The position numbers and the translations under genes were made by a program. Positions 367-64,000 of a stretch of DNA of 64,000 nt are shown one piece after another (the first letter of the stretch is position 1; every line of letters begins with the position of its first letter). The DNA comes from Cyanophora paradoxa CCMP329 (Eukaryota > Plantae > Glaucophyta), in the NCBI GenBank assembly GCA_004431415.1, contig QPMI01000207.1, forward strand, positions 62,001-126,000. Reading direction: 5' to 3'. The notes under the pieces were generated by a model that was not told the origin of the DNA, ran no database searches, and saw only the letters and a list, made by a program, of their open reading frames with translations.

Positions 367-3300
367 ATGGCGCGCCGCGGCGACGCAACCGACTCGTCTG
401 GCAACTTCAGCGACTCGTTCGAGAGGTTCTACAATGCACCTCTATCTGAAGACGACAGCGACGCCTCCCCTCGCTTTGGGCCGCGCGGCGGAAACCCGAA
501 CAAGGTCCCGTTAGCTACGGCCAGCTCCGCGCGCGTGCAGGGCAGGCAGAAGACTTCTCTCGATGGTACGGCACGGCCCAGGCGCCTCTGGCGTCGCTGG
601 CGCTAACGGCGCACCGCATCCGCAGAGTCGACGAGCGACCTGAGCGAGGGGGAGCTCCAGAGCTTGGCGCAGCTGCGGGAGGAAGCGAAGCGCAGCGGCA
701 CGGGCGTCTCTACTTCGGGCAGCCGCGACCCGTACTCCGGCATCGACCTCGGGTCCAACCCCTTCACGTCCTCGGCCGCCCCGCGCGGGGGCGCCGCGAG
801 CGGCGCGCGGGACCCGTACGCGGCGATCGACCTGGCGGCGCCGCTGCCGGTGCCGCGGCGAGGCCAGGCGCGGGGCCAGGCGCTGGTGGCGGCGACGTCG
901 CCGCTGCATCGCTCGCGGCCGCCGCCGTTCGAGTCGCTGCCGGAGGGCGACGACGCGTTCGAGTCGGCCTTCGACGAGGACCCCTTCAAGCTGGAGAGCG
1001 GCGAGCCGTCGCCGGCCGCCCGCCCCGAGCTCGCCGCCCGCCGCGCCCTCTACGGGGACGAGAGCGAGGGGGAGGGGGAGGACGAGGACCTGACGCTCGG
1101 GCCCGGCCCGCCGCTCCCGGGCCTCGAGGGCCCCGCCGCCAAGCCGGGGGCACCCCGCGAGCGCCCCCCCTCGCCCCTCTACTCCTCCCCCGACGCCAGC
1201 CCCGGCGCCGCCCCGGAGAGCGCGCCCAGCAGCGCCGCGCCGAGCTCGGGGCGGGCGGCGCCGCCTCCGCCCGAGGCGTCGGAGAGCCCGGGGGCCGGGG
1301 CGGGGGCCGGCGGGGCGGCGGACGACTCGTTCGGGCCGGAGGGGCGGAGGACGGCGAAGCGGAACCTGGACTTCGGGGCCGGGGCCGGCTCGGGGGAGCG
1401 GCGGAGCAAGGCGGTGAGCGCGAGCGTGGAGGCGCTGGTGGCGGAGGCGTCGGACGAGGAGGAGGCGCGCGAGGCGGAGCGCAAGCGCGACTTCTTCGCG
1501 CGCCTCGCGGAGACCCACGGGTGCGGGCCGCCCGCCGCCCCCAGCGCGCCCGAGCTGAGGGGGCGGGGGCAGGTCGGAGTCGCTGGACATCTCGCGCCTG
1601 CAGCAGACGCTCGACGCCGAGATCGCCGCCGAGGCCGACGAGGAGGACCGGGAGGAGCAGGCGGCCCCGGGGCCCGGCGCCGCCCCCGCCCCGCGGGCCC
1701 CGGCGGCCCCCGTGCCGGACCTGCTCGGCTCGTCGAGCCCCGCGCAGGGGCCGGCGGGGGCGGGGGCCGGGGGGCGCGCGGGGGCCGGAGCGACGAGGAC
1801 TCCGTGCGCATCACCTTCGCCTCCACCGCCCTCGCCTCCCGTGCGCCCCGCCCCTCTCCCCCGCCCTCCTCCCCGCTCACGCCCCGCAGCCCCGGCCCGC
1901 CCCTCGCCCATCGCCGAGTCCCCCTCGATGTCCGCCTCCGCCTCCCTATCCCCTCGCCGGCCCCGCCCGGCCTTCGCCCCAGCCCGCCGTCCACCTCACC
2001 CCGGCCGCACCCTCCCCGCCCCCGCCCTGAGCCCGCTCTCGCCCCGTGCCCGGCAGCGCCGCCCCTCTCCGGCCGCCGCCGTCGCCCCGTCCCCGTCCCG
2101 CGCCCGTCGCCGCGTACGAGGCGAGCCCCGCGCCGGTCCCCGCGGCGCGGCCGGGGCCGCAGCCGACCCCCGGGGCCCCTCGGGCCGAGCGTGGTGGAGA
2201 GCGCGGTGGCGGCGGCCGTGGCGGCGGCGATGGCCTCCGTGCCGCCCGTCGCCCTCCGCGCGTCGACGCCGCCCGCGCCGCCCTCGCCTCCCGCACCTCC
2301 GCCGCCCGCGCCCCCGCCATCGCATCCACCGCCCTCCTCCCCCGCGCCGCCCCTCCCCGCCCCCAAGGCCCGCACCCCCGCCCCGCTCGCCCTCTCCGCC
2401 CTCTGAGCCCGTCGCAGAGCCGTCGGAGGGGTCGGAGGGGAGGAGACGCCCCGGTCGAGCGCGGCGCCCTCGGCGACGCCCTCCCCGGCGGCCCCGCGCC
2501 CCGCCCGCGGCGCGCCGATGTCGGCGCCCTACGCGCGGCCGGCGAGCAGCGGGGCGTTCGCGGCCGGCCGGCCGCAGGCGGTCGTGCCGAACTCCCCGCG
2601 CACACGACGGCCCTCCCGCGCCCCTCCACGAGCGCCGCGTACCCCTACCTGCAGCACGGGGAGCGGCGGGAGCGGGGGCGGGGGCGGGCTCCCCCGCGGC
2701 GCCGGGCACGCCGGCCTCGCCGCAGCGGGGCCTGCCGCCGCGGAGCCCGGCCAAGGCGAAGGCGGGGCGCCGGCGGGGCTCGGCCCGCCCTCGCCCTCCA
2801 AGGCCGTCCCGGCGTCGCCGAGCCGCGCCGCCCTCTCCGCCAAGTTCGAGGAGCTCCAGCAGGCCGTCGACTCGGCCGGGCGCGCCGCCGCCGCCGCCCA
2901 GCCCCCGACTGGGCCGAGCGCGAGCGCGAGTGGCGCCGCGAGCGCGCCGCCTGGCGCATCAAGGCGCGTCCGCACGCTCCCCGCTGCCCGCGGGCGCAGC
3001 TGAGGGGGCGGGGCGCAGGAGGCGGAGCTGCGGGGCAACGCGGCGCGCCTCGAGGCCCTCCTCGAGCACGAGCAGGAGGCATGCCGCGCCGCGCCCCGGC
3101 CCGGCCCGCGCCGGCTGAGGCGGCGCAGCGGTCGCGGCAGGCGCTGGGCGCGATGGACGACGAGCGGCGCTCCCTCGAGGCGAAGATCGCCGAGGTGCGC
3201 CGGACCTGCGCCCCGCGCCCCCGGCCCCGCTGCGCCGCGCGACCCGTGGCCCCGCAGCTCGAGGCGCGCGTTGCGGCGCTGACGGAGGAGAACGCCGCGC

Positions 3301-6300
3301 TCAAGGGGCCCCAGGCCGCCGCCGCCGGCCCCGCGGCCGCCGGGGAGGCGCAGGGCGCGGCGGCGGGTGCGCGGGAGCGGCTGCGGGGCGGGGTGCTGAC
3401 GGAGGAGGAGCTGCGGCGGGTGGAGAAAGAGATGGCGGAGCAGGAGCGGCTGCTGGCCGGCTACCAGCGGGAGAACGAGCGGCTCGTCGAGGAGCTGCGG
3501 CAGGCGCGGGACGCGGCGCGGCGGGCGGAGGCCGGGGCGGCGGCGGACGGGCACCGGGCCTCGCTGCGCCTCCACGAGCAGGCCGAGCAGCTCTCCGCCC
3601 TCCGCCAGAGCCGCCGCGACGAGGCGCGCGCCGGCGAGGGCGCTGGCGCCGGCCTCGGCGGCGTGGCGGCGCGGCAGCGGGCGGCGGAGGCGGAGGCGGA
3701 GCTGGAGCGGGAGCGGGCGGGGGCGCGGGAGCGGGAGCTGGAGCTGCGGGTGGAGATCGACCGGCTGCGGGCGGGGAAGAAGGAGGCGGAGGCGCGCTCC
3801 GCCGGCGTCGACCTCGCCAAGCTCGAGGCCGAGGCCCACGAGGCGCGCCCCCGCCCCCGCCCCGCCCCCGCCCCGGTGCGACGCGCGGGGTGGGGCGGCA
3901 GGTGCGGCAGCTGCGGGCCGAGCTCGCCGAGGAGCGCGCGCGGGGCGCCCGCGAGGCCGACGAGCTCCGCGCCAAGCTCCGCTGGCGCGCCCCGCCCCGC
4001 CGCCGCCGCCCGGGCGTGGCGGGGCTGAGCGCGCGGCGGGCGCAGGTACGTGGAGAACCAGGAGATGCTCGACCGCAACGACGCCGCGCTCAAGGAGCAG
4101 GCCCGCCCCGCCCCGCCCCGCCGCTCCGCGCGCGCCTCGAGGCCTCCTCGCGGCGGGGCGCTGAGACGGGGTCCAGGGGGAGATCATCCGGGACCTGACG
4201 GCCCGCCTGCGCACCTACGAGGGGCCCTCGGGCCTCCCCGTCGCCCCCGCCCCCGCCCCCGCCGGCCCCGCCGACAAGTCCAAGTCGAAGAACAAGCAGG
4301 CGGCGGCGGGGCAGGCGGGGGTGGCGGGGGCGGGCGGGGCGGTGGGGCCGGCGCGGCGGATCCGGGAGCTGGAGGGACAGGTGGCGGAGCTGGAGGGGAT
4401 CCTGCGGGAGCGCCACCCCAACTCCATCGCCGCCCTCATCCGCGCCACCAAGCCCTCCCTCGAGGAGGAGGCCCACACCGCCGCCCTCAAGGCGCCCCCG
4501 CCCACCTCGTCCCGCCCCGTCTCTCGCCGCTGACGGGGCGGGGGCAGGAGCGGGTGGCGGCGCTGGAGGAGGAGGCGAAGGGGCGGGAGGAGGCGGCGCA
4601 GAAGGCGCTGCGGGTGCTGCGGCAGGAGCACGAGCGGGTGCGGGCGGGGTACGAGAAGCAGCTGCGGGCGCTGCACGAGGAGCTGGGGCGGCTGCGGGCC
4701 CTCGAGCGCGAGGCCAAGCCGGCCTCCGCCCGCCTGAAGGAGCTCGAGAAGCAGCTCGACGAGGCGCGCGCCCCGCGCCCCGACCCCCGCCCTCCCCCCT
4801 CGCTCGCCCGCTCAGCGGGGCGGCAGGTGCGGGCCTTCTACGCGAAGAAGGTCCGCACGCTCCAGGAGAAGCTCGACGCCAAGGGGCCCCCCGCGGAGGC
4901 CGGCCCCGAGGGGCGCCCGCCGGCGAAGCGGGCCGGGGCGCGGGGCGGCGGGGCGGGGCGGGAGGAGGCGGAGCGGCTGCGGGCTCGCGTGCGGGAGCTC
5001 GAGGCGGGGCTCGAGGCGGCGCAGGCCCAGGCCGCCGCGGCGGGGGCGGCGCCGAGGCGCTGCGGGCCCTCGAGGAGGCGAACGCCGCGCAGGCCGCCCG
5101 CGTCGCCGAGCTCGAGGCGCGCCCCGCCGCCCCCGCCCGCGTCCACCGCGCCGGCTGACCGGCCCGCAGGCGCGCATCCTGGCGATGTCGGCGGAGTACG
5201 ACGACCTGGCGCGGCACGCCGGGGGCCTGGCGGCGCGGCAGCAGCTGGCGGGGGCGGGGCTCCCCGGCGGGGGCTACGGGGGCGCCCTGGAGGAGCTGCA
5301 GCGGCGGCTGGAGGGGAGCGAGCTCGCGCGGCAGGCCCTCCAGGAGAACCTCTCCCGCATGGTCCGCAGGGCCCACTCCGAGGCCTCCGCCCGCGTCGGT
5401 CCGCCCCGCCCCGCCCCGCCACGCCACGCCCCGCGCCGGGCGAGGCGGAGGCGGGCAGAGGCGCTGCGTGCGGAGCACGAGCAAGCGGTGCAGCGGATGG
5501 TGGCCGAGCACCGCAAGGAGGTCGCGGCGGCCGTGCAGCGCGCCGGCCAGCGGCCCGCCCGCCGCCCCCGCTCCGACGAGAGCGACCCCGCCTCCGCCTC
5601 CCCCTCCGCCTCCTCCGAGGACGAGGACGAGGAGGAGGGCCGGCGGCGGCGGCGCGGCGCCGAGGCTAAGGCTGCTGCGCGGGCGGCGGCGGCGGAGGCG
5701 CGGGCGGCGGCGGCGGAGGGGGAGCTGCAGCGGGCGCGGGCGGAGGTGGCGGCGGCGCGGCGGGAGGCAGAGGCGGAGCGCGCCGCCGGCTCCGCGCTGC
5801 GCGTGGAGGTCGAGCGCGCCGTGCGGCCGCCGGTGCGCCTCGCGGGCCCCGCGCGCTGCGGGCGCCGCGCTGACGGCTCGCGCGGCAGAGCGCGGCGATG
5901 TACGCGTCGCTCGAGGCGAAGGTGGCCGCCATGGAGGCCGCCACCGCCGCCCGCGAGGCCGAGGCGAGCCGCCCGCCCGCCCCCGGCCCCCGCCGGCCTC
6001 GCGCGCGCGCGGCTGAGGCGGGGCGGGGGGGCGTGGCAGGTGCGGCGGCTGCTATCGCGGGCGAGCTCGGACGCCGACGAGCGGCTGCGCGCCCTCAAGG
6101 ACAAGTGCCGCCGCGTGCGCCCCCCGCCCCCGCCCCGCCTCGAGGAGGAGGAGCGAGGGGGCGGGGCGGGGGCCAGGCGCTGGCACGGAAGAACGCGGCG
6201 ATCGAGCGCTTCCGGCGGGAGCTCGACGAGCTCCTCGACGCGGCGGCCCGCGCGGGGGCGCCCCGCCCCGGCCCCGGCCCCGCACCGGCCCCTCCGCCGG

Positions 6301-6484
6301 CGCGGGGCGGGGCAGGCGGGAGGAAGAGGAGGAGGAGGAGTGGCTGAGCGAGGGGGCGCACGAGGCGGCGGCGGCGCTCGGGGTGGCCCTCAGCGACGGC
6401 GAGGGCAGCCTCCGCGCCCCCCGCCTCGCCTGGGCCGCCCCCCGCCCCGCCCCCTACACCCCGGCCCCCTACTCCCGCTCCTGA
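367..6484 (+). CDS. CEP162: Centrosomal protein CEP162/QN1-like coiled-coil protein (about 16 introns)
   Basis: Hand-spliced exons give LLAGYQRENERL, KLRW|YVENQEML, ILRERHPNSIAALIRA and RKNAAIERFRRELDELLD, matching recalled CEP162 blocks. Introns include 566-625 (GT), 1521-1572 (GT), 2964-3018 (GC) and 3985-4045 (GC). The Pro/Ala-rich N-terminal half has apparent 1-nt indels, so the ends are approximate. Confidence 0.8.
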
Positions 6485-7652: not shown

Positions 7653-10600
7653 TCAGAGGTGCTCGAGGATCCAGTAGGCGCCGTTGACGAAGCCGTCGGA
7701 CTCGGCCTCCACCCGCGCCAGCGCGTGCACGTCCTCCGGGTACGTCAGCAGCCTGCCGGGGGCACCCGCGCGTCGGCCGGCCGGGGCGGGGGAGAGGGCG
7801 GGCGGGGTGGAGGGGCGGGTGGGAGGGGGCGGACCGGGCCTCGACGCCGAGGGCGCGGAGGGCGTGGTAGTAGTCGAGGCCCTGCGAGGGGGCACCCGCC
7901 GGTCCTTCTCCCCCACCAGCAGCAGCGTCGCCGCCTTCACCTGCCCGCACCCCGCCCGCCCCCTCGGCCCCGCCCCGGCCCGAGCGCGCGGGGCGGGGCG
8001 GGGCGGGGCGGGCCTTGTGGACGTGGGCGGCGGGGGAGGCGGCGTACAAGGCGGCGACGGCGGGCGGGGTGAGGGGCCGCTCGCGCGAGGCCGGGAGGAC
8101 GCCCGCCTCCGCCAGCCCGCCCTCCACGAAGCACCAGTCCGGGATGTCCGTCACCCCTGCCGCCCCACACCCCACCCGCCGCCGTCGGCTGCGGGCGGGG
8201 CGGCAAGCGGGGGGCTCGCGGCCGGGGCGCGCCGGTCATGGAGGCGATGTTGGTGACGGGGTTGCGGGCGACGGCGGCGCGGTAGGCGTCGGGGTACTGC
8301 CCGATCAGGTGCAGCGAGAGGAAGCCGCCGTGCGAGCCGCCTGCGCGCCCCCGCTGGCGTCGGGCGGGGCGCGCTGGGGCGGGGGCGGGGCGGCGGGGGC
8401 GGGGACCGGTGATGAAGACGCGGGAGGGGTCGACGAGGCCGCTCGCGCGCGCCGCCTCGACGGCCTCGTGCGAGTCCCTCACGTCCTGCTCCCCGACGCG
8501 CCCCAGCAGCGAGAGCAGCGGGGCCTGCCCCGCTCCCAGCGAGCCCCGGTAGTTCACTGCCCCGCCCCTCAGCCCCGGCCCGGCGGCCTCGCGGCGGGGA
8601 GGCGGGGCGGGGGCGCGCCGAGGAGGACGGCGAGGCCGAGGCGGCAGTAGGCGGCGCAGGAGAGCAGGTACTCGCCCTGCGGGGCCCTCGCGAGGGGCGG
8701 GGCGGCTGCGGGGCGGGCGGGGCGGTGGGGCGGACGGCGAAGGCCGAGTGGGGCCCGCCGTGCACGAAGCCGACCAGCGGCGGCCGCTCCCCAGCCCGCT
8801 CTGCGCCTGCCGCCCGCTCGGCGGGGGCGGGGCGGGGTCGGGCGGGGCGGGGCGGGGCGGGCGCACGGGGCGCAGGAGGAGCGCCTCGTAGTCGTCCGCG
8901 TGCTCCCCAGCGCCTGCCGCCCCCGTCACCGCCCCGCCCCCACGCCCAGCGGCCCCCGCCCCGCCGGGAGCCCCGCGCGCCTTCCCGTCGCGCGCGTGGC
9001 CGGCGGCGGTGCGGCGCGAGGCCTCCGGGCGCAGCGTGAAGACTGCAGCGGGGGCGCGTGGGCGGGGGCCGGCAGGGCGGGGGCGAGGCGCTGCACCGGA
9101 GGCCGCGATGTCGGGGAAGGGGGCGGCCGGCTGCAACACGGGCCGCCACGCGATCGGCCCCGCCCGAGCTCCCCGACCACCACCCGCTGCGGCGCCCGCG
9201 GCCCGCTCACTGCGCCCCCGTCGGCCCCGCCGCCGCCGGCACCGCGCAAGGGAGGGGCGAGGGGAGGGGGCGGACCGGCGGCGAGGAGGGTGGTGCCGGC
9301 GGCGTCGAGGAGGGACCAGGCGACGTCGTCGGAGGCGAGCGGGGCGGGGGCGGCGTTGGGCGCCCGGGGGCGTAGGGGGCCGGCGTGAGGCGCTCGACGG
9401 CCCCCGTGGCGGCGTCGACGGCGACGAGGGCGCTCGAGAAGCCCCACAGCGTCGACGCCACCAGCCGCCTCCTGCGGCCCGCTCCCCCGCTCAGCGGCGC
9501 TGCGGGGCGGGGCGCGGGGGCGGGGCGGGCGGGCGGGCCCGTCGGGGTCCAGCAGCGGCGGGGCAGGGCCGAGGTGAAGAGGCCGGGGAAGGCCCCGCCG
9601 CCCCCGGCGCCTGCCCCGCGTCGGCCCGCGCGGGGCTCCGGCGCGCGGCGCGAAGGGCGCGGCGCGCACGTCGACGATGTCAACGACGACGCGAGGGGGG
9701 CCGGCGGGGCGCCCCTCCGCCCTGGGCGGCGTGAGGGGGCGGGGGCGGGGGCGGGGGCGGGGAGGGTGGCCCCCGGGGCACCAGGGGAGGATGCGGAGGC
9801 GGGCGGCGGCGAAGTGCGGGCCGAGCGCCTCCGACGAGAGGAAGGCCAGCGAGCGCCCGTCCTGCCCCCCCCATCAGCCCCCGGCGTGGGGTGGGGTGGG
9901 GGGCGGGGCGCGGGGCGCACGGGGCTGAAGCGCGGGGAGCGCGCCATCGGGTCCCCGCACTCGAGGGGCACCGCCTCCTCCTCGCCGCCCTCGCCGGCGG
10001 CCTCCTTCTGCGCGGCCTCCTCCTTCTTCTCGTCCTTCTTGCCGGTGAGGGGCCGCGTGGTGCGGGCGTTGAGGGGCACGAGGTAGAGGCGGGAGGGCCG
10101 GTTGTAGCAGTAGACGATCCCCAGCCGCCGCGGCTCCGTCTCCCTGCGCCCCGCCTCAACGTCCCGCCCCGCCCCGCCCCGCGCGGGGCCGCCCGCCCGC
10201 ACCAGCACGTCACGACGAGCGCCTCGTCGCCGGGGGCGAAGCTGCGCGCCCCGTTCGGCACGTCCGGCAGCGACGCGGGGCCGGGGCGGGGCGGGGCGGG
10301 GCGGGGCGGGGCGGGCGGGCAGGGCGCACGTGACCTGGCCTGCGGTGAGGCGCGCCGGGAGGCCCCGCGGCTCGATCCCGACGATCTGCCCCCGCCCTCA
10401 GCGAGCTCCTGCCCGGCTGCGCGCAGCTCCCCGGGGGGGGGGGGAGGGGAGGGGGGAGGGCGGGCCTGCTCGGCGCGGATGTCGGCGATGAAGGGGCGGG
10501 GGCAGCGGCGGCGCACGTAGGTCTCCCCCCAGTCCTCCTTCGGCCCGAAGTTGAACGCGTCGCGCACCGCCACCTCGCGGTTGCCGCCTGCCAGCGCCCC

Positions 10601-11322
10601 CTCGGCAGGGGCCCGGGGCGGGAGGGGGAGGCGCGGGCGGGCCCTGGTCCTCGTCGAAGACGGAGGCGGCGGCGGGCGGCGGCGGCAGCTGCTCCGCCAC
10701 GTACGCGAGGCGCGACTCGTCCGCCGACCAGCTGAAGCCCTTGAACCACTCGTCGGCGTAGACGGCCCCGTGCTTGCCCTCCGTCGCGATGTTCGCGACG
10801 ATGCCCGACTGGTCCCAGACCTCCACGTACCCCTTGGGCCGCCCCGCCTCGTCCGCCTTGGCGTCCGGCACCGGGCGGAAGTACGCCGTGTAGCGCCCTT
10901 CGCCGCCGGCGTCAGCGCCGCGGGGGCCCGGCGCCGGCGACGGCGCCGGGCGGGGGAGGACGGACCCGAGGGCGAGACGCTGACCGCCACCTCCGACGGC
11001 ACTTCGATGGGAATCGCCGTCTGCCGCACCGCCCCTGCGCACCAGGCGACGCGCCCCGCTCTCAGCGCGCCGCTGGCGGATGGCACGTGAGGGCGTCGCA
11101 AGCGCCCGCACCGCCCTCCGTCGCGTGCTGAGTGATGAACGACCGCTGCTTCTTCTGCTTCAAGTCCCGCTGCGAGGATCGCACGAGGATGCGCTGGCCG
11201 GCGCCGTCGCCCGGGAGCAACCACGCTTCGGACGCCGAGCTCAGCGTCGCCAGCTCCTTGAATACCTGCTGCGGAGTCTTCGAACCGAGGCCGCCGGGCT
11301 GCTCTGCTGCGCTTGAGGCCAT
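7653..11322 (-). CDS. APEH: Acylamino-acid-releasing enzyme (peptidase S9C), multi-exon
   Basis: HGGPH; nucleophile motif GGSHGGFL; AVARNPVTNIASM; EKDRRVP (Asp); YPEDVHAL (His). The N-terminal propeller has EDWGETY and LGIVYCYNRPS. Starts MASSAAEQ at 11322. Confidence 0.9.
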
Positions 11323-24490: not shown

Positions 24491-25119
24491 TGCCCGGGCC
24501 CTAGGGGGATGGCAATGGCGAGACCAGGGCACCATGTGCCATCCACATCCGTTTCTTTTCGAACTGAATATCTTTAGATGGCAATTAGGTTTATTAAATC
24601 AAAGTACATCATAAGAACGACAATCAAGAGGGCTTTCAGAATATATAATAAGGTCGGGGCTCGCAAGTTAACCTAACCCGTAAAAGGCTGCCAAAACGTC
24701 TGACAAGCTCTCAAACCTGACATCTGATCATGAGTCTCCCTCAACGTTTTAACTCTGTCATCATGAAAACTGACCTCGAAGGATGACTACATTACGACTG
24801 AACAACAGCCTTTATATTATACATAAAGACTTAAAAAAAGCCTCATATATCACCCATTCACTGGGCATAGCTTGTTGGAACGAGATTTCGGAAATGATTG
24901 CGGCCGTGCCCTGACGTGCCCCACCATACCCCACCGCCGTGCCCCAACGTGCCCCACCGTGCTCGCTGCCGTGCCCCGACGTGTCCCCTACGTAAACACG
25001 TTACTCTTGAACATCGCCACACGCATGTGAGCCGCGCCGCCGCCTGCCAAGCCGCCTGCGCCGCCCGGCGAGACGCGCCGCCGCCCGCCACGCCCTCGCC
25101 CCGCCCGGCGAGCCGCCGC

Positions 25120-50606: not shown

Positions 50607-53600
50607 CTAGGAGGATGGGGCGGCGAGGAGGAGCTCGCGGGTGCGCCGCACGAGGAGGCGCACGAGGTCGAGGGCGCCCGTCCCCGCCGTCTGCCGCCCC
50701 CGTCAGCGCCCCGGCGGCGAGAGAAGGCGGGGGCGGGGCGGGCGCACCGGGGCGAGGCGCGCGAGGGCCTCGAGGGGCTCCCGCAGCGCCCCCTCCGCCT
50801 CCCCCCGCAGCTGCTCCCGCTCCGCGGGGGTCAGCCCGGGGGCCCCCTCCGCTGGCCCCGGCGGGCGCGCCGCCAGCGGCAGCGGGCCCGACACGGGGAC
50901 GATCCCCCGCACGGGGGCGAGCGCCGCCTGCGGTGGCGTCAGCGCGCCGCGGCAGCGTGCGGGGCGGGGCGGGGCGGGGCGGGGCGGGCCTTGTCGGCGA
51001 GGAAGAAGCGGAGGTGGGAGTGGAGGAGGGCGAGGGCGCGCTCGGCGGCGGCGGCGCAGGAGCCGGCGGTGGCCTCGGCGGCGGAGCGCGCGGCCTCGGC
51101 GGCGCGCTGGGCGGCGCGGCGGGCGGCCTCCTCGCCCTCGGGGCGGCGGCGGGGCCGTCGGGCGGCCCCGCGAGGGCGCGCAGCTGGCCCGGCTCGAGGG
51201 TGTCGAGGGCGCGCAGCTGCCGCCCGGCCTCGGCCTCCGCCTCGACGGCGGCGCGCAGGCGGCGCGCCGCCGCCTCCGCCCAGCGCACCAGCAGCGAGAG
51301 GGAGGGGAGGCCCGAGGCGCCGGCCCCGGCGGCCGCGCGCGGCGGCTCGGCGAGGAGGAGGGCGGCGGCGAGCTGGTCGAGCGGGGCGGCGGCGAGGCTC
51401 GGGGCGAAGAGGGGCCGGAAGGTCGCGGCGGGGCCGGCGCCGGCGGAGCGGGCGTGGCAGAAGGCGGCGAGGTTCTCGACGACCTCGGCGAGGCTCGGGA
51501 GGCCGGGGGCCACGGGGCCCTCCTCGGCGAGCGAGCAGGCGGCGAGGAGGCGGAGGGCGAGGGTCTCCAGCTTGGCCGCCTTCGCCCCGAGGCGCTCCTC
51601 GAAGGCCGCGCTCGGGGCCAGCGCCGCCAGCAGCGCCGTCCCCAGGAAGAGGGCCCCCGCCCCGCCGCGGCCGCCCCGGGGGGCGCCCCCGGGGCGGCGG
51701 GGCGGGCTCGGCGGGGCGGCGGAGGGCGGCCTTGAGGGTGTGGCTGAAGAGGCGGTGGTGCGCGGCGACGAAGTCGAGGGCCTGGACGGCCGCCTCGGGG
51801 TGGCCGGGCAGGGAGCCGACGAGGGCGAGGGCGAGGCGCAGCGCCGGCAGCAGCAGCTGCGCGTGCCGCTCGGCGGGCGGGGGCACGAAGTCGCCGTCGA
51901 GCTCCATGGGGGCGGGGCCGCCGGCGCCGGCCTCGGGGAAGGCGTCAAGGAAGGGGGCGCCGCGGGCGAGCAGCAGCAGCGCGCCGGCGTCGAGGAGGGC
52001 CCCCGCCCCGCCGTCGCGCCCGCCCGACTGGGCCGCCCGCACGAGCAGCGCCATCTGCGCCTCGTAGAGGTAGACGCGCCGCAGCATCTCCGCCGTCACC
52101 ACCTCCCCCAGCACCCTGCCCGCCGCCCGGTCAACGCGCGGGCTCGGGGGGCGGGGGGCGGGGAGCGGGGCGGGCGCACGACTCGTCGATGGAGAGGGCG
52201 GCGCGGAGGATGTGGCCGAGGTGGCCCCCGCGCCGCAGCGCCTGCAGCGAGCGCCGCTCGACGGGGCGCCGGGGCGGGGCGGGGGCGCCGGCGAAGGGGC
52301 TGCCGCGGGGGAGCCCGGCGGCGGTGCTCTCCCGCCCGAGCTCCTCGAGGGCGAGGAGCGCGTCGAGGAGGGCGAGCGCCGCCGACTGCCACACCTGGCC
52401 CCCGGGCCCCGCGCCCCGCCCGCCCCCGCCGCCGCCGCCGAGGCCGCCTCCGCCCCGCCGGCGTCCTCCGCGTCGCGCGCCAGCCGCTCGACGAGCTGCG
52501 CGCGCCTCAGCGGCGGCGGGGCGGGCGGGGCGGGGGCGCACGGCGTCGCGGACGGGCTCGAGGAGGGCGAGGGCGGTGTCGGGGAGGGCGGCGGGGGAGG
52601 CCCAGGCGGCCGCCGGGTCGGCGGGGCCGGCGCGGGAGGCGGCGGCGTGGCGGGCGACGGCCGTGGCGTACTGGAGGGCGTGGAGGATGGCGGCGTAGAG
52701 CTGGCCCCGCACCGCCAGCGGCGCCCCGGGCCGCAGCGCCGCCTCCAGCAGCCCCTGCAGCAGCGCCCGCACCCGCCCCGGCGGCAGCGGCGCCAGCGGG
52801 CCCACCTCCAGCGGCGCCCCCGCCGGGAACGTCTGCGCGGCGGCCGGTCAGGGGCGGTGCGGGCGGGGAGGGGCGGGGCGGGGCGGGGCGCCTGCTCGCG
52901 GATCTTGGCGGTGAGGGCGAGGGCGGCGGCGGCGAGGTGCGGGGCGAGGGGCGGGTGGAGGGCGGGGGAGCGGAGGCGCAGGAGGGCGGCCTCGAGGGTC
53001 TCGAAGAGGACGCCCTCGGGGGAGGGGACGGCGGCGGCGAGCACGGAGAAGGCCTCGTATAGCACGACCTGCAGCAGCCGCCGCCACGCCCCGTGCACCC
53101 GCTCCCCCGCCCCCTCCAGCTCCCGCAGCGCGTTCCACTGCACCGCCGCCCGCAGGCCCCGCCGCAGCAGCGCCTCCGCCGCCGCCGGGCCCCGGCGGGC
53201 GGCGCCGGGCCGCCGGGGACGGGGGCCCCGCCGTCGAGGGCGAGGGCACGGCGCAGGCGCGCGTGCAGCGCCTCTATGGCGATGACCCGCACGCCGCGCT
53301 CGCCCACCTGCCGCCGACGTCAGCCGCCGCGCCGCCGGGGCGGGGCGGGGCGGGCGGGGCGGGGGCACCTCGGTGCACTCGGCGGCGGCGCGGTCGTAGC
53401 CGGGGATGCTGGCGCGGGCCTCGGCGAGGAGGGGCGGGTTGGGCGCGGGGCCCCACTCGGCGGCCTCGAGGAGCTGGAGCATGCGGAATGGCCGCTGGCC
53501 GGCGGCGAGCGCGAGGGCGGCCTCCGGAGCGTGCTCGTCGGCCTCCGGGTCGTACAGCGCCGGCGGCGCGAGCAGCAGCCGCAGCAGCTTCTCCAGGTGG

Positions 53601-56600
53601 CGGCGGTAGACGACCTCGGGGCTCCGCCCCGCCCCCGCGCTCACGTGCATCTCCACGGCGGCCGCCTGCAGCAGCCAGGCGCGCTGGTTGAGGGCCGCCG
53701 CGCGGGCGTTGGCGGCGGCGGCGAGGTCGGGGCCGTCGGGGAGGGCGGGGGGCGGGTCGAGGGGCGAGGCGCGGAGGCGGGAGCAGAAGAAGTCGCCGGG
53801 GACGGAGCGGAGGAAGGCGAGGGCGGGCGGGGAGGCGGCGGGGTTGGCGACGAGGCGGTAGAGAACCTCGTAGGCGAGGTCAGCCAGCAGCGGCTGCCGC
53901 CGGCACACCGCCTCCGACTCGAGCAGGCCGACGATGACGTGGAGGCAGTTGAGGGGCGGGGCCGGGGGCTCCTGCAGGGGCGGCAGCTGCCCGCCCTCCT
54001 CGAGGCGCCCCGTGGAGACGTCGTAGCCGAGGAGCATGTGCGCCAGCGAGGCGGCCCGCGAGACGCCCTCCGCCCCCTCCAGGCCCCCGAGCAGCAGCTC
54101 CAGCACCGCGCGGGGCAGCGAGGGCGGCGGCGGGCCCCCCGGCCCCGGCTCGGCCGGCTCGGCGGAGACGGTCTCGTCGGTGGGGGAGAGGGAGCCGAGG
54201 CGGCTGACGTAGGCGGCGCGCAGGGCGGGGGCCACGTCGGGGGCCGACAGGAAGGCGAGGATGCGGTGCGGGTCCTGCCCCGAAAGGAGCGCCGTGATGC
54301 GGACGGCGCGGTGGGCGACCTCGTCGCTGCAGGGGTACTCGACGTAGCGCGCGAGGCGGACGATGCGGGCGCGGTCGCGCTGGAGGAGCTGGAGGAGGGA
54401 GGCCGGGGCGGCGGCGGCGTCGCGCGCGTGCACCGCCGCCATGTAGTCGACCTCGCGGCGGAGGACCTCCTCGACGAGCTCGAGGGCCGCCAGCACCGAC
54501 GCCTCGTGCAGCGGCGCCGCCCCCGTCGGCGACCCGAAGCGGTCCGCCGCGAGCGCCTCGTGGCCGACGGCGAGCACGCCGGTGACGCGGCGGAAGAGGG
54601 CGGCGCGGCCCGTGTCGGCGAGCATCCCCTGCATCACCTCCAGCCCCGGCGCCCGCGCCGCCGCCAGCAGCTCCTCCCGGCTCAGCTCGCCCCGGCCCGC
54701 GGGCCGCCGGCCGCCGCGCCGGCGAGGAGGACGGCGCCGGCGGGGGCGTAGGGGGCGAGGGCGCCGGCGGGGGCGGCGGGGCCGGGGCGGCGGCGGGCCG
54801 GGCGTCTCGCGGGCGGCCTCGGCGAAGTCGGCGGAGCGGACGAGGGCGAGGAAGACGCGCAGCGCCGCGCAGACCAGCGCGTGCCTGCCGGTCCCGCCCC
54901 GCCTCGGCACGCCGGCGGGCGCGGGAGAGGGCGAGCGGGCCGGCGCACCGCTCCTCGGGCTTCTTGTACTGGCGCTCGTCGGCGCGCGCGAAGACGCTGC
55001 GGGGCCGTGAGCGGCGGCGGGGCGGGCGGGGCGCGGGGCGCGGGGCGCGGGCGGGCCTGTCGCGGGCGAAGGCGAGGTAGGGGAGGAAGCCCGGGAGGGG
55101 CCGGAGGCCGGCGCCGAGGTTGGCGGGGCACGGCGCCGCCTCGAGCAGGGCGACGAGCAGCTCCATGAAGGCCACCACCTGCGCGTACTCCTCCTGCGCC
55201 CCGCTCCCACGCTCGGACCCGGCGCACGCGGGCGGGCGGGCGGGCGGCGGGCGGGAGGGCGGGCGCGCCTGGGGCGAGCAGACGTAGTCGAGCTCGAAGC
55301 GGATGTCGGCGGGGCCGATGGGGCGCGCGGGGCCGGCCGCCCCGAGGCCCATCGTCGGGAAGAGGGCCCCACGGGCACCAGCGCCCCCGCGCCCGGCGCC
55401 GCCTCCGGCAGCGGCCCCGCGCTCGCCGCCCGGTACACCCGAGGCCGGCGCCGGGCGCCGCCTGGCCGGCCGCGCCCCGCCGAGGGCGCCGGCGCCGACG
55501 GCGAAGGGCTGCTGCGGGGACTGGCCCGGGGCCGGGAAGAGGCCGGCGGGGCTGGGGGCGAGGAGGGAGGAGCCGAGCGGGGCGGCGGGGGAGGGGGCCG
55601 GGGCGGCGGTGGCGAGGATCTGGGAGGCCTCGAGGTGGTGCCAGAGGGCCCCCGCGATGGCCGGCGTGCGCGCGTACGCCGATAGGGCGCCCATCAGCGC
55701 GGCCTTGAGGGGCCCGCCCACGGGGCAGCGGAGGAGGCCGAAGAGGGTCGGCACGTGGTCGCGGAGGGCCTCGCGGTGGGGCGGGGACCAGTAGAGGACG
55801 GCCCGCAGGAGCCCGAGGAAGGCCACCAGGGCCCGCTCCTCCTCCGGCCGCACCAGCAGCGGGCCGGCCGCCGCCTGCCCCGCGACGCCGGCGGCGGGGG
55901 CCGAGGCGGCGGCGCGCTCCTGCTCCTCCATGAGGCGCTGGTACTCGCCGACGGCGTAGAACATGTGGCTCCACGAGAGGAGCCCCGAGCGGTTCAGGAA
56001 GTCGTACGCCAGGCGCGGGTTCGCCGGCCAGCCCTCGTCCCCCGGCGCCGGCGCGGGGAGGCGGGAGGCGAGGCTCGGCTCGGGGCCGGCGGCGGCGATG
56101 GCGGCGAGGAAGCGGAGGAAGGGGACGAGGGAGGAGCGCTGGACGCCGCCCGTGGCGCACCAGTGGAGGAACTCGCGCAGCGGGCGGTAGGCCTCGCCGT
56201 CCCCGGCCTCGGGGCCGGCGGCGGGGAAGAAGCGGGCGCCGTGCTCGGGGTGGCCCCGGTAGAGCTCCGCCAGGAAGCTCAGCATGTCGCTGAAGTCCGT
56301 CCGCTTCGCCGCCGCCGCCGCCGCCGCCTGCTGCTGCTGCGCCGCCGCCGCCAGCGCCAGCGCCGCCCCGGGCCCGCCGAACGCCGGCGTCGCGGGGGCC
56401 GGCGCCGCAGCCGGCGCCGCCGCCGGCTCGTCGCCGCGCGTGTGGGCCGCCTCCTCCTGCGGGGGCGTCAGGGGGAAGGCGGGCGGGGCGGGGCGGGCGG
56501 GGCGGGGCGGGGCGGGGCGGGCCTTGGCGGCGAGCTCGGTGACCTCGAGGCCCTGGTCGAGGAGGGCGAGGACGAGGTCGTCGAGCACCTGCAGGTCCCG

Positions 56601-58144
56601 CGCCTCCGCCCCGTCCCCCACCCGCCCGCTCCGCTCCACCTGCCCCCGCAGGAACCCCAGCGCCCCCAGCTCCACGCCCCGCCCCAGCAGCGCCCGCGGC
56701 GACGTCTCCGGCGTCAGCGCCGCCGGCCGCTGCGCCCCGCCGCGTTGGCGCCGGCGCGGAGCGGGGAGGGCGGCGCGCGCACCGCCTGCTGCGTGGCGAG
56801 GGCGAGGCCCAAGGCGAGGAAGAGGGCCGCCCGCGGGCCCTCTGCGCGGCGTCCCGCTGCGTGAGGTGGGCGCGGCGGGAGGGGCGGGAGGGGGCGCACG
56901 GGACTCCCAGTCGGGGGAGAGGGCGGCGTGGGCGGCCCGCACGAAGTCGGCGGAGCGGGAGAGGAGGAGCTGGTCCGAGGGCCCGCCGGCGGACGGGTCG
57001 TGCAGCTCCGTGTTCATCGGGTTCAGCGCGCACACCGCCGCCAGCAGCGCGGTGTGCGCCGCCAGGAAGAGCCCGTCGTCCCCCGGGCGCCCCGCCAGCG
57101 CCGCGTACAGCCGCCGCACCGCCCCCATCAGCGCCAGCGCGTCGTCCCCCTTCAGCTGCCGCCGGCCTGAGAGGCCGCGGCGGCGGGGGGCGGGCGGCGG
57201 GGGCGGGCGGCGGGGGGGCGGCCGGGGCGCGCCTGCGTGTTGAAGCAGACGTAGTAGAGGGCGTCGCAGAGCAGCTTCCGCTCCTCCGCCACGTACCCCG
57301 CGTGCTCCGCCTTCAGCAGCGACTCCGGCTTCAGCCAGTCCTCCACCCGCTGCGCCCCCGCTCGCCGACTCGCGCGGCGCCGGCCGGCCCGGCGCGCGGC
57401 GGGCCCGGCGCACCGTAACAAGGGAGGCGAGCTTCCCAGCGAGGCCTTCGCGCAGCAGTTCGTCCGTGAAGCGCACAAACACGTTGCGCAGCTCCGACGG
57501 GATCGTGTCGTCGCCCCGGCCCTGCCCGGCGGTCGCGAGCGCCCCGGGCGGCGCGGTCCCGCGCAGCGACCGGCGCACCTTGAGCAGGCTGACGAGCGAC
57601 TGGAGCAGATACGAACGCTCCGTGTAGTACATGTGTGCCGCCGCGTCCTGCGGGTCGAGGCCGAGGCTCGGGCCCTGCTCGTGCGGTGAGAGCCGTTCGC
57701 GCCAAGGTCGTTGAGCAAGCGGGCCGACCATGTGGATGCCGGTCACGAGCAGCTCCACGCAAGCGATCTCATTCAGCTTGAGCCGCTCGCTCATGAACAA
57801 CGTCTGCGGTGCGATGAGCGCGCCGGGTCGGTCCGCTTCGCTCGCGCAGCGAACCGCGCTGATGAAGTCCGCCGCGAGCTTCGGCATCCCTCCCTTGATC
57901 GGAACATTGGAGTTCTGCACCTTCTGCTTGTCCTGCTCGCTCGGCGGCTGCGCGGGGTAGGCGGATGTGCGGTCGGTCGCGGCTCGCGGCACGGCGAATC
58001 GCGGGAGGGGACCTTGTTCTCGAGCGGCGCCAACAGGGACGCTTTGTGCTGCCGCAGGAGCGCCTGGAGCGCCGGTACGTTCGCTTCCCGGAACGCGAGG
58101 GCGTCCTCCAGCGCTCTCTGTAAGGAAGCGAAAGACGCCGTCAT
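50607..58144 (-). CDS. NUP205: Nuclear pore complex protein Nup205/Nup192
   Basis: MSERLKLNEIACVELL, YYTERSYLL, LFGLLRCPV...LKAAL..AL.A.ARTP.IA..LW..LEASQIL, DIRFEL...EEY....AF..L, PANLGAGLR..GF.PYL.F and R.YK.PEE. Confidence 0.85.
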
Positions 58145-58458
58145 CGCGATCTCCCGCAGCCGACGCAGCCGGCACGCCTCCCGCGACCGCAACAAGCAAG
58201 CGCCTGCCGAGCAAGCCGACGACTTGAGCTTCTACCCCCCTCGCTCCGGCCCCCTCTCCGCAATCGGACTTCCGGAGCGCTCATCGCGGTAGCGCGCCCG
58301 CATCCGGCCTCTGGTCGAGACCGGCTAGCTTTCGGAGTACACGAGAGGCCCCAGCAGCCCCTGGAGCGGCCGGCGGCTGCCAGCAGGTTTTGAATTTCCG
58401 GGCGAGCAATGGCTCCCAGGTCGGTCCAGCAGCTGCCGACCTGTTATCGCTAGTCTGT

Positions 58459-61400
58459 ATGCTAACTACGCGTGCGACAATCCGCTGCAGGCCGCTCGCT
58501 CTGGTCGCTCTGGGCGTTATCGTCCTGGTGGCAGGGCTGGCCCAGGCGGCGGAGCCTATCGGTGCGGCTACTCTGGACTCTGCATATGTGGCACGTTCGC
58601 CCGAGTCTTGTTTGCCCCCGACGCTCGGGATCTTGCGCAGGCTCCACAACTACGTTCGCCGGCGATGGGCACAAGCAGCGCGTTGACGGCAAGTGCCGAG
58701 CATACGTCTAGATCGCTTGAAGTAGTCTCTAATGCGTCGCCTTCTTTTCCGTTCGCCGGCAGGCATGGGCATCGACGCCTCTTTCGACCACCCATGGGAC
58801 ATCAGCGGTGACGAGCGCGGCCGCCTTTTCTTCGTGGCAGATCGCGATTCGAACTCTATCCGACGGATCTCCTCTACCGCCTCGGTGGAGACGTTCGCTG
58901 GCTGCGGCCACGCCGGCTACATCGACAATTCGAAGCCGTCGGTTGCATGCTTCGACAGGTGCTGCCCTGGAGCGCTCGCCTGGTTTACATCTGGCTGGAT
59001 GAGCTCTAGCTAACGAAGGGCGCGTGCCCGTGCAGCCCGACTGGTGTTGCGTACAACTCGAAGGACGACATCCTTTTCATTGCTGACAGCAAGAACCACC
59101 GCATCCGCCGCATCACTGCGGCCTCCCGTGCGCTCATTCCTTCCTTCTTTCGCTGGCCAGGGGCCGAGGGGCGAGCCAGATGAGGACGGCTCGGCGCACG
59201 TTGACACGATCGCCGGCACGGGCGTCGCGGAGGCGGTGGACGGTTTCGGCACCCTGGCCTCCTTCCGCAACCCGTACGTGCTCCACTACGACCGGTACAA
59301 CAAGCACATCTACGTCGGCGACGACTGGCTCATCCGCCGCATCGACTGCGACGGTAGCCGGTTTTGCTTCTTTCCCTTTCCTTTCCCCTCTCTTCCGACA
59401 CGGCGCTGCAGGCCAGGTCACGACCCTCGCGCGCGTGAACGACCCCACCCTCGCGGATCGTTACGGTGCGCCTCTGCGGCTGCGGCGCGGCTCGGGAAGG
59501 GGCGGCGAGCCGGGCACGCAGCGGGCCGCCCGGCGATCACGGGCATGTTCTTCGACTACACCGCCAACCGCCTGTACGTTGCTGATGGCTGGACCAACCG
59601 CGTCAAGGTTCTCGACGTCACCAAGTCCCCTGGTCTGGCCCAGCCCCCCGCTCCGGGGTTCGCCCCGCCTCAACCTGCCCCGCAGCCGTCCTCTCCCTGT
59701 ACGCCGGTGGCGGCGGCCGCTTCCTCTCGCGCGGCGAGCGCCTGTCAGCGGGCGTCGGGCGCCCGTGGGGCGTGGCGGTGAACCCCTACACGCAGACCGT
59801 CTACGCGCTCAGCAGCGAGGACAACCGCGTGCTGAAGGTGACCCCGGAGGGCTTCATCGAGTCGGTGGCCGGCAGCGGGCAGTACAGCTTCCGCGACGGC
59901 GTCGCCGAGCAGGCCTCGTTCCGCTCCCCGCAGGGTCCGCCGCGCCGCGCGCCCCGCGCCCCGCGCCGCCCCTCCCGACCGGCCGGCCAGGCGGCCACTT
60001 CGTGATCACGGAGGGCGCGATGTACGTGACCGACGCTGACAACCACCGCGTCCGCCGCATCGTCGTCTCCGGTGCGGCCCCCGCGTTGTCCCCGGCCCGG
60101 CGCTGCCCCTCACGCCCGCCCCAGGCTACGTCGCCTCGGTCTCCCCGTCGGCCGGCACCAAGCGCGGCGGGTACCTGGTGACAATCTCGGGCGGGAACCT
60201 CGGCAACGGGGCGGCGGGCGACATCTACAGCGTGCTGCTCGCCGGCGCGCAGGCGACGATCGTGAGCCAGTCGGCGGACCAGGTGGTGGTGACGGCCGGC
60301 GCCTCGACGCGCGTCGGGCGCGGCAACGTGGTCGTCGTGTCGCGCTCGAAGGGCATGACGGTGGGCCCCGTCGAGTTCGACCTCGGCTTCACGTACCTCG
60401 ACGCCCCGGAGCCGTACATCGCGACCGTGCTGCCGAACAACGGCCCCCTGTACGGCGGCAACAAGGTGACGATCACGGGCTCCGACCTCGCGTCGGGCAC
60501 CGGCTCGGACATCACCTCCGTCTACCTCGGCGAGGTGCCCGCCACCATCGTCTCCAAGAGCCCGTACTCGGTGGTCGTGACCGCCGGCGCGGCCGCCTCG
60601 GCCGGCACGCGCGACGTCGTCGTCACCTCGGGCACCGGCTCCACCCGCCGCACCCTCGCCTACACCTACAACCCCAAGGGCTCCATCCTCGGCCTCGAGC
60701 CGCCCTCGGGACCCGTGCGCCCCGCCCCGCACCGCCCGCCCGCGCCGCCCCGCTCATCGCCGCGCAGCTGGAAGGCGGGAACATGGTGACCGTGCGCGGC
60801 TCGTCGCTCGGCTCGGGGCGGGACATCTACGAGGTGGTCATCGGGGGGAAGAGCGTGCCGCCGGTGAGCCAGACGAACAAGCGCGTCACGGTGATCGCGC
60901 CGCCGTCGGCCAAGGAGGGCCCCGTCGACGTCGCCGTCCGCTCCATCTCCTACGGCGAGACCTCCATGGCCTCCGCCTACAGCTACGAGGCCGGTGCGCC
61001 GCTCGCCCCGCTCCCTGCCCCCCGCCCCGCCGACGCGCCCCCGCAGACGGCTTCCTGACGCTGGCGGACCCCGAGCTCTCGCGCTTCAGCGGGGGCATCG
61101 TGGTGACGATCCACGGCTCGCGCTTCTCGGACGGCTCGGACGTCTCGAGCGTGGCGATTAACAAGAAGGAGGCGACGATCCTCTCGCAGAAGCAGGGCGA
61201 GGTGGTCGTCCGCGTCCCGTCGGGCTCCGACCTCGGCCTCGACCCCCGCGAGAGCGCCTACGTCAAGGTCACCGTCACCTCGCGCAGCCGCGGCGCGACT
61301 TCGAGCAGCAGCATCCTCCAGTACGTCGCGCAGGGCGTCATCATGAGCGTGAGCCCGAACCTCGGCCCCGTCGAGGGCGGCAACCAGATCACCATCGCCG

Positions 61401-64000
61401 GCTCGCACCTCGGGGACGGCGACGACATCACCGCCGTCACATTCAACGGCGTCGGCGCCAAGATCCTCCTCCAGTCCGCCACCAAGATCGTCGTCGAGGT
61501 CCCCGCCGCCGACGGCCCCGGCACCACCGACATCAGCGTCACCTCCTCGGCCTACGGGCAGACCAGCGCCAAGGACGCCTACCGCTACGTTCAGAGTGCG
61601 CCCCCGCCCGCTTTGGGGCGCCCGCCGCGGCCGACGCGCGGGCGCAGAGGGGACGATCAAGGGGATCGTGCCGGACGAGGGCCCGCTCGAGGGCGGCAAC
61701 TCGGTGACCATCACGGGGGCGTACCTCGCGGCGCCCAGTGGCGACATCGTCACGTGCCGCATCGGCTCGCAGCTCGGCAAGGTGACGGACGCGAGCGCGA
61801 GCCACGTGGTGTGCGTGGTGCCGGAGGGCCCGCGCCCCGGCCTCGTGGACGTCGAGGTCGCCAGCCTCCTCTCCGGCCTCGTCCTCGCGGAGGACGCCTA
61901 CACGTACCTCGCCCCGCCGCCCCCGCTCTCCAACATCACCGCCGTCGTCGCCGGGGCCGCCGGCGACGGCTACGTCATGAGCGCCCGCTCGGCGCCCAAC
62001 GGCGTCTCCGCCGAGTACGACCTCACCGTCACCATGCCGACGCGCCACACCGTCGTCCTCGGCAAGGCCGTCGGCGCCAACGCCGGCGCGAGCGTCAAGT
62101 ACCAGTGGCAGCAGACGAACGGCGACCGCCTGCGGGTGGCGAACGTGGATAGCGCGGACCTGGCGCTCTGCGAGATGGACCCCGGCTACTACACCTTCCG
62201 CCTCAAGGTGACCGACGGCGAGGACACCGATGCCACCGTCGTCCGCCTCCGCGTCAACGGCTGGCACGGTCCGCGCCCCGCCCCGGCCCCCGGCCCCCGG
62301 CCCCGCTGAGGGTGGCGCAGAGCGGGGCGCGTCGCTGCTGGCGGCGGTGATGTCGGCGGTGACGATGGCGGTGCTCGCGTCGGCGTCGACGGCGACGCTG
62401 GTGGGGCAGAAGTTCGGGCACGTGCTCCTCCTCGTCTCCTTCGTGCAGTTCCTGGCCGCGCTCAACGGCCTCTCGGTGGAGTTCCCCGCCAACGTCGTCG
62501 CCCTCTACGACGGCCTCGCCTGGTCTATCCTCCACTTCAACTTCCCCTGGGAGGACGTCCGCCAGGGCGACATGCCCGGCCACATCTTCCGGTGCCCCGC
62601 CCCCTCCGCCCCCCGCCCCCGCCCGCCTCCTCTCACCCGCCCCGCCCCGCAGCCGCGGGCAGCCGGTGCCGGACGAGGACATGCCGTGCCCGCTGGACCA
62701 CGTCTTCCTCTGGACGCCGCAGTCCCTCGGCTGGGGCGCCGCCTTCCTCCTCCTCTCCGCCGTCGTGGGCGCCCTCGGCTCCCTCATCCTGCGCGCCGCC
62801 CTCGGGCGCGCGGCGCTGCCGGGGCGCTTCTCCGTGCAGAAGACCTTCTTCGTGACGGCCTCGCTCGTCTTCTTCGGGATCGCCCTCCACGCCTTCCGCC
62901 TGCTGCGCTTCGCCTCGCACCTGACGACGGGCGGCATCTACAAGGCCATCCTCGCCATCGCCCTCCTCGTCCTCCTCGTCTTCTACCTCCTCTGGCTCTT
63001 CTCCGCCCTGCGCCGCCTCGTCACCGACTTCCGCGCCTTCACGTACCGCGCCGGCGTGCAGCCGAAGATGTTCGGCTCGGCCCTCGCCGGCGCCGCCGGC
63101 TCCCTCGACGGCTCCGCCCTCGCCCGCTCCACCGACGCGAGCGCGCGCGACTCGGAGACGCTCGGCGCGCGCGGCGGCTTCCGCCTCATGAAGTGCCACG
63201 GCGACTGGGAGGCGGCCGCCGGCGGCGAGGCGCGCCTCAAGATGTTCGGCTGGACGCTGCGCAAGTACCGCGGCGTGAAGGGGGCGTACCTCTACCACCC
63301 GCTGCTGCTCGTCAAGTTCCTCCTCATGGGCTTCGTCATCGGCATGTTCAAGGGCGCCGAGGCGGACCGCAGCGCCGGCTGGACGCAGCTCATCGTCCTC
63401 ATCGTGCTGCAGGGCGTGGAGGTGATGTTCCTGGCGATGACCATGCCGTACAACCACAACGCGATGAACATCCTCGCGGTGGGGACCTCCTCCATCGAGG
63501 CCCTCGTCCTGCTCTTCGCCGCCGGCTGCCACGCCCAGTCCTCCTTCGCCGTCTCGGGCCACCTCGGCTCCGCCCTCGTCGGCCTCGCCTTCGGCTGGTT
63601 CCTCATCCTCGCCGCCTGCGAGCTCCTCATCCACTGGTACGTGCGGGCCTGGAAGCGCCGCGAGTTCGTCCCCGCCAAGGACCCCCGCTCCATCTGGGAC
63701 GAGTTCCCCTCCGTGCGCCCCCGCCCCGCCCCCCGCCCGCCCCCCGCCCCGCCCGCCTCCGACGCCCCGGCGGCAGTACATGGGGGCGGACGGCGGGCGC
63801 ACGGCGTACGTGTCGTACACGCAGAGCCCCGCGGCGACGACGGCGGCGCGCCTGAACGCCTCGGTCCGCTCGGCGGCGTCGGGCGAGTCGCCGACGGTGT
63901 ACGGCGCCACGGCGGGGCAGCAGCGGCAGGTCTACGACGGGCCCGGCGGCGGCGGCCTCTCCCTCTCCGCGGCCTTCGCGCAGAACGCGCAGACCTCCAC
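58459..64000 (+). CDS. Large membrane protein: signal peptide, NHL repeats, multiple IPT/TIG domains, PKD-like Ig domain and TRP/FLC-like multi-pass region (3' truncated)
   Basis: Hydrophobic leader LALVALGVIVLVAGLAQA. NHL motifs A.F..P and VAD..N..IRRI. Repeated P..GP..GG..VTI.G. YQWQQ..G...PGYYTFRLKVTD. TM region starting VQFLAALNGLSVEFPA...AWS and including TQLIVLIVLQ...L....PY. Confidence 0.8.

Follow-up and report, generated by a model that had tools for sequence, protein, structure and literature searches.

Why do so many introns of the glaucophyte alga Cyanophora paradoxa begin with GC instead of GT, and how are they recognized? The question is raised by a 64,000-nucleotide (nt) stretch of contig tig00000880 in the assembly of Price et al. 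2019, called the window below, which has a GC content of 74.5% and whose densely packed genes are interrupted by introns of ~50–80 nt. The whole assembly has 67.6% GC and 9.2 introns per gene and was annotated by BRAKER1; the passages of the paper drawn on here leave GC donors unmentioned (PMC6704402). An earlier note, made from the letters of the window alone, had claimed very high use of GC-AG introns, a divergent donor consensus and, in two genes, an exonic G before every GC donor, and had concluded that recognition of the 5′ splice site is relaxed or altered. Our analysis leads to a more conditional answer: with a probability of about two-thirds, these are ordinary U2-type introns in which contacts at the exon end and at intron position +5 make U at +2 dispensable, and GC pressure fills the sites that permit it.

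RNA evidence comes from a P5-type ATPase gene (tig00000880_g5186; 28223–33563, + strand), whose model has 28 introns, nine of them with GC donors. Assembled RNA contigs, which show the presence of each junction and not its proportion, were compared with positions 28200–34190: X1 and X5, from two studies, are spliced, whereas X16 and X17, from one 2012 sample, are unspliced. Twelve short joints were found, each in both X1 and X5. Every equivalent register of each joint was slid through, and exactly one register ended in AG, giving seven GC-AG and five GT-AG introns and no GA donor. With a slash marking the cut, the GC-AG introns are 31187–31250 (GAG/GCGCGC), 31516–31565 (AGG/GCCAGC), 31766–31813 (AAG/GCGCGC), 31889–31947 (GAG/GCGCGC), 32172–32232 (CCG/GCCCGC), 32357–32404 (CAG/GCCCGC) and 33039–33096 (GGG/GCGCGT); the GT-AG introns begin at 30575, 31015, 31372, 31628 and 32017, in the span 30575–32079. 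All seven GC-AG joints follow an exonic G and all five GT-AG joints follow a C (Fisher p = 0.0013 for −1G versus +2). The spliced lengths between contig pieces equal those of the 28-intron model to the base (649, 1813, 642 and 126 nt).

Two further GC-AG introns of this gene are given by the model and the published annotation: 29507–29580, which lies outside the listed joints and whose removal restores the TGES motif, and 29873–29928 (AAG/GCCCGC). All nine GC donors of the model follow G, and GT is found without exception after the 11 exons whose last base is A, C or T. The earlier count of nine GC donors in 28 introns, with a G before each, thus recurs in this model, and the RNA joints sort by the −1 base just as that rule predicts. 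A possible 29th intron (33498–33547), in the model alone, would add another GC donor after G. Nor do the spliced contigs turn to nearby GT donors, the outcome that would have undone the claim: at five of the seven GC joints, any in-frame GT lies more than 30 nt away, and the remaining two joints themselves rule the GT alternative out. At 31187 and 33039, unspliced contigs of X16 and X17 run across the GC donor without a single differing letter, so these two are not assembly errors, although the contigs are probably from the strain that was assembled and are to that extent not fully independent.

The earlier warning that standard gene finders would mis-annotate this genome holds for tools restricted to GT donors, not for the existing annotation of the ATPase gene and of a GH15 glucoamylase-like gene. 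A GT-only parse of the ATPase gene recovers 17 of 29 introns, against 22 with GC allowed, scores 159 log units lower and needs a frameshift. The published RNA-guided model (tig00000880_g5186.t1; 1232 of 1235 residues map to 28223–33560) has 27 introns identical to those of the 28-intron model, with none of the nine GC donors missing. Six GC donors are used in the published model of the GH15 gene (EukProt tig00000880_g5189.t1, EP00741; 602 of 602 residues map to 42324–45446). In practice, GT-only gene prediction fails and RNA-guided prediction copes. At 33320–33365 (+), the published ATPase model reads through a GT intron where both spliced contigs depart from the genome, at ~33317–33319; a CAGCAG there offers two candidate AG acceptors.

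For the window as a whole we assembled 151 confident introns in 13 genes from the RNA joints, the ATPase model, the published GH15 model and the calls of a gene hidden Markov model (HMM), which contributed 103 of them; the remaining 48 form a non-HMM subset. The donor model was blind to exonic bases and weighted T and C equally at +2, and each gene was parsed after training on the others. Unfiltered, the calls are noisy (43 of 50 held-out introns correct), but those with a score margin of at least 3 were correct for 34 of 34 held-out ATPase and GH15 introns, and only such calls were kept. This filter favours consensus-like positions +3 to +9, +5G included, and was applied alike to all donor classes. 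A stricter set holds 143 introns. The median intron is 60 nt long and the shortest 46 nt. GC donors make up 49 of the 151 introns, or 32% (95% confidence interval 25–41%), and 43 of 143 (30%) in the stricter set, in keeping with the high use first claimed.

The donor consensus is G[T/C][G/C]CGC. Positions +3 to +6 read GCGC in 55 of the 151 introns and CCGC in 40, together 95, while RAG (R, purine) occupies +3 to +5 in just two; the divergence that had been noted is therefore real, and the strong RAGT match that is typical of mammalian GC donors, without defining them, is not seen. C at +4 (~90%) and G at +5 (83%) exceed background in low-GC introns too (p = 6e-5 and 3e-7, respectively), where the excess of C at +6 is not significant (p = 0.08). 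Among GC donors, −1G reaches 90% (100% in the non-HMM subset) and +5G 88%. Introns end in GCAG, with C at −3 in 92%. A branch-like CT[G/C]A lies at −25 to −8 in 65 of 143 introns, against 4.2 in shuffles, and is the predicted branch point on the strength of its motif; adenosine peaks at −11 to −13 upstream of the YAG acceptor. The polypyrimidine tract typical, though not defining, of animal and plant introns is absent, positions −12 to −5 being 35–63% G and 2–7% T. Minor, U12-type introns were considered and rejected: no intron has an RTATCCT donor, whose sole match in the window, at 103, lies outside the gene models, and the U12 branch site TCCTTAAC has no match in the introns. Allowing GA donors in the HMM gave 17 calls, of which a single one exceeds a margin of 3; the GC donor at 58689 is the better reading of that call.

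The choice between GC and GT depends strongly on the neighbouring bases. GC donors are found at 44 of 105 introns after G and 5 of 46 after any other base, and at 16 of 34 and 0 of 14 in the non-HMM subset. Three of the five exceptions are lost under the length and acceptor filter and a fourth has a GT alternative. The fifth may be genuine: the 51-nt intron-like stretch 47441–47491 (+), called at HMM level, has CAT/GCGCGC as its only fitting donor, after T, and is either a real exception to −1G or an assembly error. A logistic model of GC use gives effects of −1G (p = 3e-6), −2A (p = 4e-7), +5G (p = 2e-4) and intron GC (p = 0.006) and none of distance from the ATG, and GC donors are found at 0 of 11 introns after G whose GC content is below 75%. 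Along the genes, intron GC climbs from ~73% near the start codon to ~91% beyond 1.5 kb.

The dependence is one of degree. Among GC-rich introns, the share of GC donors declines from 24 of 26 where AG precedes the cut and G stands at +5, to 11 of 35 for other exons ending in G with +5G, to 3 of 14 after G without +5G, and to 2 of 35 after non-G. The non-HMM introns of all GC levels give the same order (10 of 13, 5 of 14, 0 of 6 and 0 of 14). Neutral C/(C+T) in GC-rich introns is 0.91–0.94, and the GC share in the AG and +5G context equals this local C share, so that +2 looks nearly unconstrained in the best context while T is retained elsewhere. Only 12 donors carry fewer than two of −1G, +2T and +5G, against 26 expected, and in the non-HMM subset 2 against 8 (permutation p ~1e-4). 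GT donors themselves show the classic see-saw between exon and intron, with +5G in 95% after non-G and in 70% after G (p = 0.002). Of the relaxation originally proposed, the wide tolerance of +2C stands; it is conditional, however, requiring −1G and being strongest with −2A and +5G.

These observations suggest the following mechanism. A donor would be accepted once enough of the standard contacts remain: those of exonic −1G and −2A with C9/U10 of U1 and with loop 1 of U5, those of +2U with A7 of U1 and the active-site network, and those of +5G with C4 of U1 and the ACAGA box of U6. AG before the cut and G at +5 would together render +2U nearly dispensable, and gene bodies, being under strong pressure towards GC (intron C/(C+T) ~0.94), would then come to have GC at most of the permissive donors; the fewer the supporting contacts, the more often +2T would be kept. 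Which small nuclear RNA (snRNA) makes each contact is something we infer, and the change from T to C is probably driven by mutation or biased gene conversion and not by selection. Human GC donors follow a −1G/+5G rule that has been explained by cooperation of U5 and U6 (Parker, Fica and Simpson 2025, PMC11732430), and their compensation is the same rule as the conditional +2C tolerance of Cyanophora.

Several points weigh against this explanation. First, C stands at +4 in 80% of low-GC introns, where the background of C is 40% (p = 6e-5); since +4C is enriched even at low GC, composition falls short of explaining the whole consensus. A C at this position finds no pairing partner in canonical U1 or U6. 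Second, the donors have a mean U1 match score of 4.3 of 9, whereas human GC donors fit the remaining U1 consensus closely. Third, most of the set (103 of 151 introns) was called by the HMM under a filter favouring consensus-like +3 to +9. Fourth, GC content alone is a poor predictor of the GC-AG share, as in Micromonas RCC299, with 2.7% at 64% GC (PMC3033335).

Because +4C is left unexplained, one rival stays alive, in which the spliceosome itself has changed: a variant U6 ACAGA box, a loss or change of N6-methyladenosine (m6A) or of METTL16/SNRNP27K, or an altered U1C, LUC7 or Prp8 would make it read +4C, +5G and +6C, with proofreading of +2U relaxed. We regard this as unlikely, although a serious contender. 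It would account for +4C at ~90% overall and 80% in low-GC introns, for RAG at +3 to +5 in just 2 of 151 introns, and for a +2 position that looks unconstrained in the best context (24 of 26, against an expected 0.94); the +4 preference is also known to follow the state of U6 m6A and SNRNP27K (PMC11732430). On the other hand, the compensation among −1G, +2T and +5G would be expected of standard snRNAs, the excess of +6C falls short of significance in low-GC introns (p = 0.08), a classical G/GCAAGT donor is apparently used as well (58689), and other algae rich in GC-AG introns retain a canonical U1 (PMC3033335). An Rfam scan of the window found no snRNA. The narrower proposal that the glaucophyte major spliceosome has shifted to a +4C+5G donor, via changes in the ACAGA box of U6, in its m6A mark or in partner proteins, with +2 effectively neutral in AG/G.S.G, is doubtful in our judgement. 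If it holds, both the conservation of +2U and the cooperation of U5 and U6 could be studied in Cyanophora as a natural test case.

Two other proposals fare much worse. Hairpins between a C-rich 5′ half and a G-rich 3′ half might hold the two splice sites close to each other and take over the role of donor recognition. Across the window, the first halves of introns are 61% C and 27% G and the second halves 44% C and 41% G, and the consensus of the donor is almost the reverse complement of that of the acceptor. The complementarity exists at the level of the consensus only: the ends of individual introns do not covary at any offset (no z above 1.3), the duplex of an intron's own halves (−26.4 kcal/mol) equals that of swapped halves (−26.5 kcal/mol), the mean folding z is +0.25 against shuffles, and GC introns are not more strongly folded (+0.38 versus +0.20), which makes hairpins improbable. 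More improbable still are introners, intron-generating transposons whose target-site duplication would supply the GC. They are present in Aureococcus and Micromonas and able to co-opt splice sites (PMC9860276), and the GH15 gene, with at least 20 introns and with listed relatives that are mostly bacterial, suggests much intron gain. Direct repeats between donor and acceptor are not in excess, however (4.32 versus 4.24; of at least 7 nt, 3 versus 3.6; permutation), exons downstream of GC introns have no preference for starting with GC, and with C and G runs masked the 143 introns share just short, partial, low-complexity matches; an introner origin that is old and decayed stays conceivable. Finally, an artefact, whether T-to-C assembly errors at donors or true GT donors nearby, has a negligible chance and for the ATPase gene is already refuted, since in spite of a long-read, very GC-rich assembly with some frameshifted-looking regions (Nup205, 36–40 kb) the positions are set by the RNA joints, the GC of two donors recurs unchanged in unspliced contigs, and errors would be independent of the bases at −1, −2 and +5.

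The other genes of the window vary in their use of GC donors. In a CEP162-like gene (367–6484, +), these stand at 2964, 3843, 3985, 4101, 4492, 4764, 5117, 5964 and probably 3079. The confident set has eight GC donors in 14 introns, one of them doubtful, which comes close to the nine of 16 counted before; the RNA comparison was confined to the ATPase region. A word search that started from the gene's long exon brought up one distant homologue (P0001) but not the published Cyanophora model, whose length probably falls outside the range searched. P0001, locally compared with the joined gene model, aligns gap-free over five successive GC junctions (3843, 3985, 4101, 4492 and 4764). Among them is the intron 3985–4045, whose removal joins KLRW/YVENQE; its nearest in-frame GT would add nine residues and leave an intron of 34 nt, below the observed minimum of 46. 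The intron 2964–3018 (WRIK/EAE), outside the P0001 alignment, is based on frame and HMM. These two and 29507–29580, the examples singled out in the earlier note, all run from GC to AG.

The GH15 glucoamylase-like gene (tig00000880_g5189; 41946–45449, +) has GC donors at 43181, 43318, 43896, 44007, 44350 and 45326, all after G. Its published model starts at 42324 and seemingly misses N-terminal exons matching the IGNC region of P0003, a protein of another organism used solely as GH15 homologue; the likely start is the ATG at 41946 (41946–42510, +). An in-frame proline-rich stretch at 44866–44943 (+), not in P0003, is either a retained intron or a real insertion. The relatives listed are mostly bacterial or metagenomic and the gene has at least 20 introns, so horizontal acquisition followed by heavy intron gain is possible judging from sequence.

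On the reverse strand, HMM-confident GC donors lie at 10642, 10465, 8618, 8232 and 8013 (8862 is doubtful) in an acylamino-acid-releasing enzyme gene (7653–11322, −) and at 57232, 56522, 55268, 55056, 52891 and 50989 in a Nup205-like gene (50607–58144, −). Apparent frame breaks in the latter (51100–51750, 53170–53270 and 54670–54820, −) and in a gene at 35.9–40.5 kb (37250–38500, +) are apparently long-read errors or unresolved introns. An incomplete gene for an NHL/IPT-TIG protein (58409–64000, +), few of whose exons end in AG, has GC donors at none of its 13 confident introns. Its low-GC intron 58689–58762 (+), read by eye, has the classical donor G/GCAAGT and restores RVDG/MGIDASF in an NHL repeat, and a U1-matched GC donor appears, from this reading, to coexist with the GCGCGC type. 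In a lower-GC stretch, a sugar-phosphate cyclase gene with a DHQS_C domain (14347–16747, +) likewise has GC donors at none of six confident introns. An intergenic-looking block holds three tandem-repeat tracts (22440–23250, 23460–23900 and 25100–26250), and at 45853–50469 (+) the gene model makes a Tic22-like N-terminus continuous with an ARM-like region.

How unusual is such a share of GC donors? Over 61 species taken together, 1.3% of introns are GC-AG, but the figure is 39.6% for Aureococcus and 22.2% for Micromonas pusilla. The U1 5′ end of these two algae is canonical, and the share is high in the genomes that are richest in GC (PMC3033335). Newer pelagophyte annotations give 14–17% (bioRxiv 10.1101/2024.10.30.620910), and GC donors reach 56–65% in Emiliania (PMC4028052). 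Emiliania (Gephyrocapsa) huxleyi resembles Cyanophora as a very GC-rich alga with a major class of GC donors and the canonical AG acceptor; there, GC donors were attributed to genome GC content and were missed by ab initio models (PMC4028052). Cyanophora belongs to a different supergroup, has a lower share (~32%), lacks RNA-supported GA donors (4% in Emiliania), and already carries GC donors in the published models of two genes. Aureococcus anophagefferens, Micromonas pusilla and Pelagomonas calceolata have 14–40% GC-AG introns in genomes of 65–70% GC, with a canonical U1 5′ end in the two that were checked. Aureococcus and M. pusilla carry introners, whereas Cyanophora, with ~9 introns per gene (PMC6704402), yielded no introner signature in the window.

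Human U2-type GC-AG donors share the −1G/+5G consensus and the offsetting of +2C by exon-side and +5 contacts (PMC11732430, PMC3167603). They differ in frequency (~1% versus ~32%), in having RAGT and not [G/C]CGC at +3 to +6, and in the polypyrimidine tract that Cyanophora lacks. The AG//GU and //GURAG classes of donor (Parker, Fica and Simpson 2025, PMC11732430) show the same compensation of −1G and +5G in GT donors; in Cyanophora, +4 is C and not A or U, and +2 takes part in a third trade-off, which is frequent enough to measure. We found no report of GC-AG abundance in Cyanophora in a literature search that left most subscription journals outside. Cyanophora is a further GC-AG-rich lineage, in line with other very GC-rich algae for which similar rates have been published. 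What this window adds to knowledge of GC-AG introns is the graded rule together with the +4C preference. With Cyanophora, the glaucophytes, a group of the Archaeplastida, join the short list of lineages in which GC-AG is a major intron class. Tens of thousands of GC donors are expected genome-wide, which would give measurements of the trade-off among −2A, −1G, +2U and +5G much greater power than human introns can, and the preference for C at +4 raises a specific question, which concerns U6 and its m6A mark.

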